NCBI GenBank assembly: GCA_048772705.1 | Contig: JBLWGC010000104.1 | Span: 372,001-436,000 of the forward strand | Source of the DNA: Leidyana gryllorum EB-2025a | Lineage: Eukaryota > Protista > Apicomplexa | Direction of reading: 5' to 3' | DNA length: 64,000 nt | In this document: in pieces, positions 34,860 through 40,404 of the stretch | How positions within the stretch are numbered: the first letter of the stretch is position 1 | Layout of the letters: each line of letters begins with the position of its first letter | Position numbers and translations under genes: made by a program | Notes under the pieces: generated by a model | The model's database searches: none | Seen by the model: the letters and a program-made list of their open reading frames with translations, nothing else | Told to the model about the DNA's origin: nothing

Positions 34860-36168
34860 ATGGCCTTCCCGCCCCGCCCGCCCGGAGTCAGACCCAAAGA
34901 CCTGATTCGAGAACACTACGAACCCCAACAGCAGCCATTACCTCTCTGGTCAGACTACTTTGCCGAGCACGATGTCCTCGATTTGCCCGGAAGTGGTCGT
35001 CACTTCAATGCGTACTTTGCTGGCAACTGGTCTCCAGGAGCCACCGAACCCGTTATAGTCTTTTTCCACGGTGCTGGACACTCCGCCCTCACCTGGGCGC
35101 TTGTAACCGTGAGTGCTCGCTGCCACTCTCTGCTGCACTCATTCATTAGAGAACTTTGGCACCTCACACTCTGATTGCCGCCTTTGACTGTCGTTACCAC
35201 GGAGACACCCGTTGCACTGACAACCGTCCCTTATCCATCGAGACACTCGTGCAAGACGGTGTTGACTTTGTTGCAGCCGTGAGTGCTGTTATTATTGTTG
35301 TTGTGATGAACTCGCGAACTCGCCCTCTCCCCCTCCCTCTCCGGTTAAGCACCGACCTTTTGTGACACTCCGCATGCCGATGCCAACTGAGCGATAATGT
35401 GCTGCATTGGCTTCTGGTTCAACGCGCAGCGGCCCTTTCATCTTCAATCTCAGGTACGTCAGCGTCTGGAAGCGCGAACGAGGGGTCCGGGTGGCCCTAT
35501 TATTCTCTGTGGCCACTCTCTCGGTGGCTCTGTGGTAGCGCGTGTGGGGAAGAGACTTCAGGATGTGGATGAGGGGGTTTTCGCCGTGGTGCTGCTGGAC
35601 GTCTGTGAAGGCGTAGCCCTCGAAGCTTTACATTTAAATCACCACTTTATCAGTCAATACCCCAAATCCTTCTCACGTCTCCAAGACGCGATCACCTGGG
35701 CACTGACCCACGTGGTACGAAGCGAAGAGTCTGCACGGATCAGTATCCCGTCTCAGTTAAAAGAGGTGGACGGTGTCTGGTGAGACTCTCTCTCTCTCTC
35801 TCTCTTCCCCTCCAATGCACCGCCTCTTTTCGAACTTAGGGTCTGGAAGGTTGATCTGGAGGCGACGGAACCGTATTGGCGGGAGTGGTTCGAGGGAATG
35901 GACGATGACTTCTTGGCCTTAAAGGCGTTCAAAATCTTGGTGCTCGCTGGCACACCTCACGACCGCCTCGATAAGAGGCTGACGGTGGCCCACATGGAGG
36001 GGAGATTTCAATTAAACATCATTGCCAAGACGGGCCATGTTATCCAGGTGGGCCTTGACCGGTTCAGCGGTTTCACAACGGTATCAGGAGGATCAATCTG
36101 ACCAGCTGTCGCAAGTTCTGATGTCATTTGTGTCTCGTTGCAAAGTTTTGGGTAATCTGAAGCGCTAG
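34860..36168 (+). CDS. PPME1: Protein phosphatase methylesterase 1 (PME-1), multi-exon
   Basis: WSDYF, FFHGAGHSALTWA, AFDCRYHG, GHSLGG, LDVCEG.A, SARISIPSQL, YWREWFEG, RLDKRLTVAHMEGRFQL and GHVIQED. Confidence 0.92.
35291..35398 (+). ncRNA. Candidate intronic box C/D snoRNA in PME-1 intron 35279-35453
   Basis: Box C GTGATGA 35303-35309, D' CCGA 35352-35355, C'-like TGTGACA 35361-35367 and box D CTGA 35387-35390. Flanking ATTATTGT/GCGATAAT can pair. The host intron is 175 nt, far longer than the local norm. Confidence 0.65.
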
Positions 36169-36242
36169 AGGGGCGACATTGAGCTCAGACATGCGACGTG
36201 CTTAAGTTATATTATTCGCTGTCCAACTATCAACCAAACCAA

Positions 36243-39200
36243 ATGTTCTCTGAGGCGAAGTACACCCCTGCTGATCGTCAGCTCTTCCCCGTTCGTCGTT
36301 CGTCAACTGTACGACTCACTGAAGTTGTTTTAGAGAGTACGCACAGATTCCTCTATCAGACTCATCTGTCAATCTACGCACTCTGCAGCACCCATTCTCG
36401 ACTGTCCTACAGCCCAGAAATGGGTCCGCAAGTCTCTCTTGGAGACAAGAGGCATTATATCTGTCCATCAGTCTTTGGCCAAACCAGGCTATCTGCACCT
36501 CGAGGATGCCTGGCCACTTAGTGTATTACATGTGGTACACAGGAGCGGAATCGTTACACCGATGGTGGGCTTCCGGATGTCTCCGCCTCACTCCTCACAT
36601 TCTGTTCCAGAAACTCTGTGAAATCCTTACGAGTATCGGCTGTCGCGTTCTCAATATGGAACTGAGAAACCTCAGTATCAACAAAACTCCCCTCTTGGAG
36701 GACGAGGTGACGGTCTCCACCATCCCGCTCCCCCCCGAGACGGCCAACAAGTCGGCGGCGGCCTTCCTCAAGAACTTTGTATTATCGGTAATTAGACCTC
36801 AAACAAATGTCTCCCTATCCCTACTGCCGTCCCATACAGGTCGCTGGAGTTCGGTTTGCAACTGTGTTGGATTGGCCCGCCCGGATCTGCGTCTCCTACT
36901 CGCCGAGTGTCATATCTTATCGCGCACTGGAACGCGAAGTCCAACGAGGCATCAACGAGTTCTCAATCCACACCAACAAGCCTATGACCTCTCCCCAGCC
37001 TCATTCACCACCGTCGTCGCCGTATTGGGCTCGACAGCTGTGGATCATTCTCAGTGGACTGTGTATCTGTCAGATACCGCAGTGCGGCTTCTTAGAGTGA
37101 GAGCCTTCACACTTTCGATCTCTGTCAAACTGTTGCTCATCATTTTAGCACTCCCTGGCTTTCCGGGCTTAGCATTCGGGACCTAGCGTCTGTTAGCTTA
37201 GTGTTGTACACTTTCGCAGTGTATTCGGCCCCCCACCACCGCTTTGTCTTTCAAGTGAGTTGCCGTTGCCTTTGTGTCGTTGTCGCTCGCCACTCATTCA
37301 CAAACAGAGCTTTATGAGACGGAATACAGAGATGGGAACACTTCACGTGATTGTCATGGCTGGGACAGCCTTGTTGGGGGCGGGTCTTTTGACACACGCT
37401 ATGCACCTGTTGTACGCCCTCCTGGTGGACTTCAAGTTGGATCCGCGTAGTGACGACTTGGCCGCTAAAACCTGTGCTATGGCGGCTTTGACTCTTAGCA
37501 TTCCCTTCTCCCAATCTGTGAGTCTCTTGTGCCAAGAATTAGGTCCAGACACACTCGGTTCTCTCAACAGTGCTTTATGCGTCAATGCTCTCGTGGATGG
37601 CTGCGTCCCTCAAAGTCTGCTCTGTAAGTTTTAGTGATTAGCATTCCAATATATCCCATTCCAGGGAGACTAATGTCTTTTTGGGGAGCGGTGAATCCGG
37701 CACGGGAGAGTGGGTCCCCGCCTCTCAGATCAAACCGGGAGACCTGGTGACCTTTTCAGCAGGAAATGAAGTACTCTGTGATTGTATTGTAGAATCTATG
37801 GTGAGTGGCGACTCCAGTTTTGGGCGATGAGACAACGAGAGTAGACGGATAACGCAACCGTTCACGCACCGTATCAAAGTTGCAGCCAAGAGTCTGAAGT
37901 TTTCAAGGTTCAAGTGGGACAGCGTATTGCAGGTGGCTCTGTGGTAGATCGTGGGAAGATAACCGTCGTGATCCGCCAAGAGATGGATCAGTCGGCCACA
38001 CAAAAGCTTCAGGATGTCGCAGATTGGATGCCAATGTTGGGAGGCATTCTAGGAGCCCAGTCACGATCAGCCAAATTTGTAGTCACCTTCCAGGGCTGGA
38101 TCGCCACTCTGTATCTCGTGTCACTAGTCCTGCGTATTCTACTTCGTATCAACGTGAGTGTCAGTCAAGTGTCAGCTTCTCCTCCCAAACCTCCGACAGA
38201 CCGCCGAGTATCTGATGCACGACCTGAGAGCTGTGATGCTCGTTATTTTGGCCTTCCCTCCCACATTATTCTGTGAGTCAAATTCTGTCGTTGTGGAGAC
38301 ACACACACACACACACTTAAATCGTTCAGTTCACTGCATCATCCCGGCGTGTGGATTTGTAAAGGACACATTGCTCAGGAACCGATTGGGACTCATTGTG
38401 GATGTCAATGCACTCTCGAATGCTCCCAAAGCGGGCTACTGCCTATTAGATCTCCCCGCTTCAGCAGAGCCCAATGACAACTATGTGAGAGCTAGTCTGC
38501 AGCCACAAGCCTCTAAGCTTCACATCATATCACCACGTCAAGTGGAGAGCCTCGGGGCTGCCTGTGGGCGCGTTCTTCACAACGAAACTTCTGTTGTCGA
38601 CACCCTCGAAGCCTTTTTGGAAGGGACTGAGACTGGGCTGCAAGAGGCAGCAGAATCCGGAGGAATGACCACCAACCCTGCGCAAACAACAGCTGCTGCC
38701 TTCTGGCTGATCGTTCGTACCATTCTTAGCGCCTCGGACAGCCGAACGTCCATTGCTCAAAATCTTCTCTCCACAGCCAACGAGCATTGTCCGACCCTCG
38801 CAGATCACAACAATACCCTCCACAACATTGATCTTCGAGCCAGCCGGGAGCCAATGACGTGGGTGCTGGCTGGTCACCTGGTCAGATTGACATTGGATCC
38901 GACCTCCCTCACCTCTGCCAGTGAAACTGTAGGTACATCCGGGCTTGTGTGATGACCACCTCTTCCTCGGCAGACGCGTATCGGTCAGCAAGGAGTTCTC
39001 GGGTTGGTGGATATTTACCTCACCATTGATGAAGAGGTCGTAGGTAGGCAGACAGTAGAGTTACGGAACCTTTTCACTATCTCTCTCTCTCTGTTTCCAA
39101 ACAGCTGCCATTCCTTCAAGACTGACATTTGACACTCAGAGTTTGGAGGCATTCCAACGACTGATCGCCGTAAGTAGGAGTGCCGTTGCCGGTTGACCGA

Positions 39201-40096
39201 TATTTTCCGATCGGTAGGCTTATCGATTCGATGGATGGATAGCTCACGGGTACGCTAATGCCTTATCGGAGTACATTGCTCGGACTGTGGGAGTACCTCG
39301 CGATCACGTAGTGCGTGTGGGTCTGACATGCGGAGACACACTGGAGAGCTTGGCCAACAGCATAGCGTCCGGGGAGCGGGTGTTGGAAGGATATACGGAG
39401 GCATCTGATGGGTCGAGGCGGCCGGCGACCACAGTTGGCGGCGCCATTCTTTTGCTGAAGGCCTCGACCCCCGATGAGTTGGACCCGATCGGCCCAGAAG
39501 CCAAGCACATAATCAGCTGCTCCTTGTTACCAACTTTACACCCGGACTTCGAAAGTTCCCCATCAATGCGATGTTTCGACCGTCAGGCCAATATTCAGTT
39601 GCTGTCATACGAGTGAGTCACATATAAGAGACGATGTGTGATTGTTTGATCACAATGCAGCTTGGGGGCCGTCTCGACCATCTTGTATTGGGGACGAAAG
39701 CTTCAATTTGTGCTGACAATGGCGGTGGGATGGTATTACGTGATAATTGCTGCCAACTGTATCCTGAGTGTGAAGGCTATGGCGAAAGAGATCAATGCGG
39801 GATACACCGGATTCGCCAACTTTCTTTTGTTGGTCTCTTTCAACACAGCGGGTGCTCTGGTCGCCAGATTCGCTACGATTCGGTACCTTCGGAAGCTACC
39901 AACTTGGGCCGACAGTCACGTGCGGGCAGGTCAACCTCAAAGCCATATCTTATCGGTGCAAGACGATACCCAAGAGAGAGCTTCTTTAAATCCAGACGCC
40001 GCCTTGGTGGTTGCCTCGTCTCCCCGGTATCAAAAGACAGATGCTCAAAGCTTGGCAGGAGCTGTGATGTCTGGACAGGAATACGTCGATATCTGA
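36243..40096 (+). CDS. Highly divergent P1B-type (heavy-metal/Cu) ATPase homolog with degenerate catalytic motifs, many exons
   Basis: In P1B order: 2 HMA-like domains, TM block with NTEMGTL, A domain (IKPGDLVTFSAGNEVLCDCIV; IAGGSVVDRGKITV), VILAFPPTL, GLIV...CLLDLPAS, IYLTIDEEVV, IAHGY...IARTVGV, ANIQLLS and two final TMs. Confidence 0.7.
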
Positions 40097-40104
40097 TTTT
40101 TTCT

Positions 40105-40404
40105 TCACTTGAAGGGTTGTTGACGAACAGCTTTTGGCCAATATCCCTTGTTCACAGGTGCGACAAATTGGTAAGCTGGACCTGTTGGAGCCATCAATCG
40201 CGGAGTTGATGGTGGTGTCTCCTCCAGTATGACCACAGGTAGTTCAGGGGGCTCGATCTCGTTAGACCTTCCAGTCAAACACAGCCCCCGCTGCAATCTA
40301 GGCTGATGTATGAGCATTAGAACGCAGATCACAACGCCCACAGCATATGCAACAACGAGGGCCCAGGCACCCTCGACCCAATACCGATCGGCCCTCTCCG
40401 ACAT
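40105..40404 (-). CDS. Small single-pass membrane protein, hypothetical
   Basis: 99-aa ATG-started ORF with one strong hydrophobic helix, filling the gap between two genes. Confidence 0.5.
   Translation of the reverse strand: MSERADRYWVEGAWALVVAYAVGVVICVLMLIHQPRLQRGLCLTGRSNEIEPPELPVVILEETPPSTPRLMAPTGPAYQFVAPVNKGYWPKAVRQQPFK

Follow-up and report, generated by a model that had tools for sequence, protein, structure and literature searches.

Locus and gene model

We analysed a 64,000-nucleotide (nt) stretch of DNA from the apicomplexan Leidyana gryllorum EB-2025a (contig JBLWGC010000104.1, positions 372,001 to 436,000 of the forward strand; G000:C104:372001-436000), hereafter the window, whose own positions are used below unless a contig is named. 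It belongs to a 15.5-Mb eukaryotic assembly (GCA_048772705.1) with a guanine-plus-cytosine (GC) content of ∼52%. An initial annotation, made from the sequence alone, had described positions 36243–40096 as a full-length P1B-type (heavy metal) ATPase with an intact architecture and degenerate functional motifs. Our results reveal that the locus contains a real, single-copy, multi-exon, protein-coding gene, and we consider it probable (roughly 60%) that this is an intact gene for a non-catalytic membrane protein that derives from a P-type ATPase, most likely of the P1B type, and has lost all signature motifs.

The gene was modelled by dynamic programming over GT..AG introns of 30–130 nt, with a codon log-odds table whose training frames, each open over 300 codons or more, came from the window and from other fetched loci; no exon of the studied gene was among them. 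This splice-aware search returned one chain, which runs from an ATG at 36506 or 36530 to a TGA stop at 40094–40096. The in-frame intron 38273–38329 was put in by hand because its removal restores a P1B-like spacing. The final model has 12 predicted GT..AG introns of 41–100 nt and 968 codons with no stop (Table 1). All donors are GTRAGT-like (i.e. GTGAGT in six introns, GTAAGT and GTAGGT in two each, and GTGAGA and GTAATT in one each) and all acceptors are YAG (nine CAG and three TAG). The intron sizes agree with the genome mode of 40–59 nt, as estimated from GTRAGT..YAG candidates flanked by coding sequence, among which sizes below 35 nt are almost absent. Two introns read in the canonical Cu-ATPase gene of the same genome are likewise short (∼41–47 nt).

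On the real strand, the splice search reached 135.8 bits with 978 codons; the reverse complement yielded 19.5 bits, and none of 30 first-order Markov shuffles exceeded 22.9 bits. The in-frame codon score of the model is 0.143 bits per codon, against −0.135 and −0.101 in the two off-frames, and falls inside the in-frame range (0.03–0.22) of the 22 long open reading frames (ORFs) of the window; GC by codon position (0.557, 0.455 and 0.577) is also indistinguishable from that of these 22 ORFs. The concatenated introns score negatively in every frame and have a lower GC content (0.48). The gene has drifted beyond BLAST recognition by its own paralogue and has nevertheless kept these features, which neutral evolution could not have preserved; there is thus good support for selection acting on a protein, as opposed to decay. 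The initial annotation had reached the same view from an open frame and canonical splice sites, both of which are borne out for 36506–40096 (12 of 12 introns), and had correctly remarked that the ORF list of the window shows the locus only as fragments.

Table 1. Exons, introns and 5′ open frames predicted at the studied locus (window positions).
Feature	Position	Strand	Description
Possible first exon	36243–36308	+	ATG 36243, 22 codons; coding score only 0.03 bits per codon
HMA1-like open frame	36334–36520	+	CPTA 36403–36414; membership of coding sequence uncertain; 0.112 bits per codon vs −0.03 in other frames
Exon 1	36506–36787	+	N-terminal soluble region, ATG 36506 or 36530; 0.124 bits per codon; first half of the 'second HMA-like' segment (likeness by eye and global alignment, not significant)
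Exon 2	36840–37096	+	Remainder of HMA2-like segment, Pro/Ser-rich linker, first hydrophobic helix (model residues 163–179)
Exon 3	37197–37254	+	Weakly hydrophobic segment
Exon 4	37308–37517	+	Two hydrophobic helices (residues 211–227 and 250–266); 0.205 bits per codon
Exon 5	37571–37623	+	Short basic linker ahead of A-domain; weakest exon, in-frame score −0.101
Exon 6	37665–37800	+	N-terminal half of actuator (A) domain; PGDLV 37735–37749
Exon 7	37845–38153	+	C-terminal half of A-domain (SQES 37884–37895, LQDVADW 38007–38027), then helix M3
Exon 8	38200–38272	+	Helix M4; FPP 38254–38262 at position of CPC in P1B pumps (positional)
Exon 9	38330–38928	+	DLPAS 38449–38463, 46 residues past FPP; then ∼150 residues at N-domain position
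Exons 10 and 11	38974–39039; 39140–39169	+	Separated by a 100-nt intron
Exon 12	39218–39612	+	HGY 39245–39253 at TGD position; EGYTEA 39386–39403 under GDGxND in global alignment only
Exon 13	39661–40096	+	Helices 844–860 and 874–890, hydrophilic tail of ∼75 residues, TGA stop 40094–40096; 0.189 bits per codon
Introns 1–4	36788–36839; 37097–37196; 37255–37307; 37518–37570	+	Predicted
Introns 5–8	37624–37664; 37801–37844; 38154–38199; 38273–38329	+	Predicted
Introns 9–12	38929–38973; 39040–39139; 39170–39217; 39613–39660	+	Predicted

Some parts of the model allow variants. Exon 5 is the sole canonical path into the A-domain frame. The two 100-nt introns (37097–37196 and 39040–39139) may conceal small exons or use alternative sites: an alternative 61-nt intron (39044–39104) between exons 10 and 11 would add ∼12 residues, and intron 2 contains, in another frame, a hydrophobic stretch (SVKLLLIILALPGFPGLAF, at about 37110–37180) that could represent an overlooked exon or offer a different model for the second membrane helix. 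Intron 8 (57 nt) is stop-free and in frame, and contains a (CA)n microsatellite at 38297–38315; if it were retained, the FPP helix would be followed by 19 extra residues with the frame unbroken.

Relationship to P-type ATPases

Pfam, NCBIfam, PDB and other databases were searched exon by exon, while the joined model was compared only with a profile built locally from 108 P1B proteins. At the sequence level, P-type homology is statistically supported for the actuator domain alone. Exon 6 matches the Pfam family PF00122 (E1-E2_ATPase; E 1.7e-5, 24.8 bits) at profile positions 12–43, and exon 7 matches it colinearly at positions 58–101 (E 0.074, 13 bits). Both matches lie under the 28.1-bit cut-off, and PF00122 is the only Pfam match of the gene; Pfam Hydrolase has no match in it. 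Exon 6 was also picked up in a genome-wide six-frame profile search, and in NCBIfam it matches TIGR01494 (P-type ATPase; E 4.3e-4) and TIGR01525 (heavy metal; E 0.024). An A-domain sub-profile scores 12.1 bits against the joined model (E 8.5e-6), a value that none of 1000 shuffles reached, and in a segment placement test the A-domain reaches 25.6 bits, where the null is −1.8 ± 3.8 (0 of 200 shuffles). The domain sits between helix pairs, as in the P-type family.

A second, weaker signal comes from the TGD region. The sole BLAST-level similarity between the gene and the Cu-ATPase of the same genome is one 31-residue stretch there (tblastn, E 0.007); hhalign aligns exon 12 with a P1B alignment at the TGD columns (E 0.01), and the best position of the TGD segment in the placement test is the expected site. 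Over the whole length, semi-global alignment with free ends gave trivial overlaps and a forced global profile alignment was used instead, which yielded z-scores of 4.6–6.9 against full shuffles and of 2.3–3.7 against shuffles within windows of 8–30 residues that preserve the hydropathy profile. No match to the P1B alignment was obtained by hhalign for exons 8, 9 and 13, a PDB sequence search with exons 7, 9 and 12 gave only noise, and exons 9 and 12 have no paralogues within the genome.

In the N-terminal region, neither of the two HMA domains that the initial annotation had placed there was detected. PF00403 (HMA) matches none of the N-terminal pieces at E values up to 10, and neither the HMA1-like segment (profile test, p about 0.055) nor the HMA2-like segment is significant; over the whole genome, the HMA model finds only the canonical Cu-ATPase and one weak site elsewhere. 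The earlier wording of a full-length protein with intact architecture is overstated, given that neither the HMA domains nor the P/N identity of the large loop can be demonstrated by sequence. What is supported, by the A-domain matches, topology and motif scan (see below), is a P-type-derived protein without catalytic motifs; equivalences of the other domains are not significant.

Membrane topology is consistent with a P1B pump. Kyte–Doolittle peaks are found at model residues 163–179, 211–227 and 250–266 before the A-domain (with a weak one at 181–199), and at 418–434 and 448–464 after it, followed by a loop of ∼370 residues, two more peaks (844–860 and 874–890) and a hydrophilic tail. The predicted layout thus agrees with the eight-helix P1B topology, in which four helices precede the A-domain and only two follow the P/N loop. 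By hydropathy, FPP lies in the fitting helix for the conserved M4 proline, although this segment does not reach significance in the profile test, and FPP is spaced 46 residues from the Asp of DLPAS, compared to 44 in a bacterial CopA. In P2 to P5 pumps, the large loop is followed by four to six helices. The 3–4 + 2 + 2 helix layout, together with the weak TGD-region match in its proper place, suggests that P1B is the most likely assignment.

Alternatively, the gene could encode a membrane protein with no kinship to P-type ATPases, whether an orphan or specific to the lineage, in which the A-domain match and the motif vestiges arose by chance or convergence. About 85% of the protein length has no significant similarity to any family, and every Pfam and NCBIfam score is under the curated cut-off, which is what makes this explanation worth weighing. 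However, the A-domain signal is repeated in three profile libraries and in the shuffle tests, it falls exactly between the helix pairs as in the family, the TGD region is best placed at its expected site by two methods, and the colinear global alignment reaches z-scores of 3–7. We regard an unrelated origin as unlikely and descent from a P-type ATPase as the better explanation.

The 5′ end

The initial annotation began the gene at 36243 and included a first HMA-like segment in its exon chain. This segment cannot be joined to the gene body by an intron of any size typical of this genome. Its open frame has no ATG of its own: it is linked to ATG 36243 only through a 25-nt intron (36309–36333, donor GTACGA), and to the gene body only through a 22-nt intron (36521–36542), failing which a one-base frameshift is needed. 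A relaxed splice search of the 5′ end found no canonical path that takes in the HMA1-like frame. Because both linking introns are atypical for the genome, far under its intron size range, we regard 36243–36520 as only a possible part of the coding sequence. Three origins are conceivable for this interval: a genuine exon that is spliced unusually, an indel introduced in assembly, or a relic in decay that precedes the start codon at 36506 or 36530. At 36334–36518, every plus-strand frame lacks stops for ∼185 nt, and the HMA-like frame scores best for coding. Upstream, a gene for a PME-1-like esterase (35397–36168) lies in the same orientation, with its stop 75 nt ahead of ATG 36243, a very tight spacing.

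The peculiar 5′ end bears on a further alternative, namely that a duplicated Cu-ATPase has become a pseudogene, either untranslated or recently inactivated, whose apparent openness is a product of intron choice. An HMA1-like frame that reaches the body only with 22- and 25-nt introns or a frameshift would fit such a relic, as would the loss of all catalytic motifs and the lack of detected orthologues. Yet neutral decay at such a divergence would have introduced stops throughout the frame, at about 1 per 21 codons, and damaged the splice sites, whereas the frame stays open over its full length, every junction is canonical, codon bias is normal and the hydrophobic helices are kept; scores of the control sequences never come close to that of the real strand. 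A pseudogene is somewhat less likely even than an unrelated origin, and an intact gene for a P-type-derived protein accounts better for these features.

Signature motifs

None of the motifs DKTG, DKT, CPC, TGD and GDGxND occurs in any plus-strand frame of 36100–40300, GDG is absent from the right region in all three of these frames, and HP, YN, MxxSS and CxxC are absent from the model. Therefore, no alternative splicing can restore DKTGT or CPC, a possibility that the initial annotation had named as a refutation and that the three-frame scan rules out. Literal TGE occurs once (37702), at the start of the A-domain and away from the catalytic loop.

The codon positions quoted earlier for CPTA, FPP, HGY and the Asp of DLPAS (38449) are exact, and the replacements read from them fare differently from site to site. 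In the traceback of the forced global alignment, (i) SQES lies under TGES and LQDVADW under piqrlADkv in the A-domain; (ii) FPP lies in the M4 helix at the CPC site; and (iii) the Asp residues of DLPAS and DKTGT coincide, HGY falls at TGD and EGYTEA at GDGiNDa. As SQES is aligned with TGES, the Glu of this loop is kept, so that the statement that TGE is not found is literally correct for the catalytic loop but leaves out its degenerate counterpart. The changes of CPC to FPP and of DKTGT to DLPAS stand insofar as the codons are there and the canonical motifs are not; both equivalences are positional, and profile tests do not make them significant. For the change of TGD to HGY, the codons are likewise in place and the canonical motif is gone, with the weak match of the region at its expected site. 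GDGxND is indeed lost, while EGYTEA is assigned to its site by the forced global alignment only and the segment test does not place GDGxND there. The reported loss of HP and alteration of the late transmembrane YN and MxxS ligands agree with the model, the late transmembrane equivalence being positional only.

These replacements leave room for a still-active but highly unorthodox P-type ATPase that would use the Asp of DLPAS, the Glu of SQES and the acidic substitutes in EGYTEA, since the phosphorylated Asp and the A-domain Glu, the residues of the chemistry, are kept at aligned positions and both Asp of GDGxND are conservatively replaced by Glu in the global alignment; it is nevertheless very improbable, as phosphoryl transfer and nucleotide binding require the Lys, Thr and Gly of DKTGT, TGD, the P-domain Lys and the N-domain HP, all of which are absent along with all P1B metal ligands (i.e. 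CPC, YN and MxxSS), and the alignments of the catalytic sites themselves are not significant.

Proposed nature of the protein

We favour a polytopic membrane protein of ∼970 residues whose ancestor would have been a P-type ATPase, most likely a heavy-metal pump of the P1B type. The protein appears to keep the family layout, with an N-terminal soluble region, three to four helices, the actuator domain, two helices, a cytosolic loop of ∼370 residues, two helices and a tail. All signature motifs of phosphorylation and of the transport cycle are gone, with FPP for CPC, DLPAS for DKTGT, HGY for TGD and SQES for TGES, and the large loop would be a degenerate P/N domain. Such a protein would form no aspartyl-phosphate intermediate and so would not pump. 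It may instead have been retained to serve in a membrane without catalysis, for example as a scaffold, regulator or binding partner, while copper transport is presumably carried out by the canonical Cu-ATPase encoded on another contig. The wider list of roles offered by the initial annotation (i.e. scaffold, regulator, sensor or passive carrier) is pure conjecture.

Several results weigh against this interpretation. With regard to the gene model, all introns are predicted and a search for RNA runs listed none; exon 5 scores negatively for coding, and the 5′ end, a weak spot, could contain a frameshift lesion. With regard to homology, the sub-profiles of M3-M4-DKTGT, of the C-terminal P-domain with M5/M6 and of HMA lie inside their nulls, the placement test does not recover the M4-DKTGT, GDGxND and M5/M6 segments, and the whole-family hidden Markov model gives the joined model 3.9 bits, against 2.4 bits for the best shuffle. 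Exon 9 has no phmmer match in 1.84 billion representative proteins and no relative in JGI metagenomes, an ESM Atlas feature search, Pfam or NCBIfam, and these database searches with exon 9 found no orthologue of the gene. Single-sequence AlphaFold2 models are of low confidence, with predicted local distance difference test (pLDDT) values of 36 for exon 9 and 43 for exon 12; with the exon-12 model, Foldseek found nothing at E ≤ 0.001, a result that is meaningless at a pLDDT of 43.

A more specific proposal can be made only tentatively, and we hold it to be distinctly less likely than the general one. The gene might represent a stand-alone pseudo-pump, i.e. a P1B paralogue that lost all catalytic and metal-binding motifs, stayed under purifying selection in gregarines and now acts in the membrane without catalysis, for example by regulating or partnering the canonical Cu-ATPase or a parasite-specific membrane complex. 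Kinases, phosphatases and proteases have well-known pseudoenzyme members; such members are hardly documented for P-type pumps, and this would be, to our knowledge, the first P1B-derived pseudoenzyme described. If true, the P-type scaffold could be reused without its catalytic cycle, and the protein would offer a new object for parasite membrane biology. Its importance is limited for now, with a single genome, no orthologue found and 85% of the protein past sequence recognition.

Comparison with known systems

A canonical Cu-ATPase, which the initial annotation had advised looking for elsewhere in the genome, is present on contig C230 at ∼391.7–396.3 kb (locus L015, G000:C230:389500-399000, minus strand). 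It contains CPC, DKTGT, TGD, GDGSND and an HMA domain (PF00403, E 1e-10), and matches TIGR01525 (E 2e-66) and TIGR01511 (E 4e-64). Its best named relative is a protein of the gregarine Blabericola migrator (43% identity), followed by one of Vitrella. This pump has SGES for TGES and NKHP for SEHP, and carries a Pro-rich low-complexity insert of ∼250 residues ahead of the first conserved helices. Another P-type ATPase gene (L001, G000:C104:365284-368955) lies 5 kb before the window start and is the genome's best PF00122 match; it encodes a P2-type (Ca/Na-type) pump and was ruled out as the parent copy of the studied gene.

The studied protein resembles P1B pumps (i.e. CopA, ATP7 and Ccc2, including that on C230) in several respects: (i) its A-domain is detectable by PF00122 and TIGR01494; (ii) its helices are arranged as 3–4 + 2 + 2; (iii) a Pro lies in the helix before the large loop and an Asp follows 46 residues on, at nearly the CopA distance; and (iv) the helix of the TGD region is placed correctly. 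The A-domain loop is SQES in the studied gene and SGES in the C230 pump, a small hint of a common origin within the lineage. By contrast, the studied protein lacks CPx, DKTGT, HP, TGD, GDGxND, YN, MxxSS, CxxC and a detectable HMA domain, and its N-domain region is ∼80 residues longer. The genes also differ in structure, with at least 12 introns in the studied gene compared to two seen and a third implied in the examined part of the C230 gene.

The one precedent found comes from another P-type subfamily, and our literature search on P-type pseudoenzymes turned up nothing else relevant. Degenerate P4-ATPase (flippase) modules occur in guanylate cyclases of alveolates (P4GC), notably those of gregarines and Cryptosporidium and GC-beta of Plasmodium; these modules are retained although DKTGT and the A-domain motifs have changed or disappeared, and their ATPase activity has been proposed to be lost or modified (PMC13466520). 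Those modules are ten-helix members of the P4 subfamily, form one protein with the cyclase and are conserved across alveolates, whereas the studied gene is free-standing, has a P1B-like topology and has no detected orthologue. In common, both would be membrane modules derived from P-type ATPases in the same lineage, with degenerate motifs.

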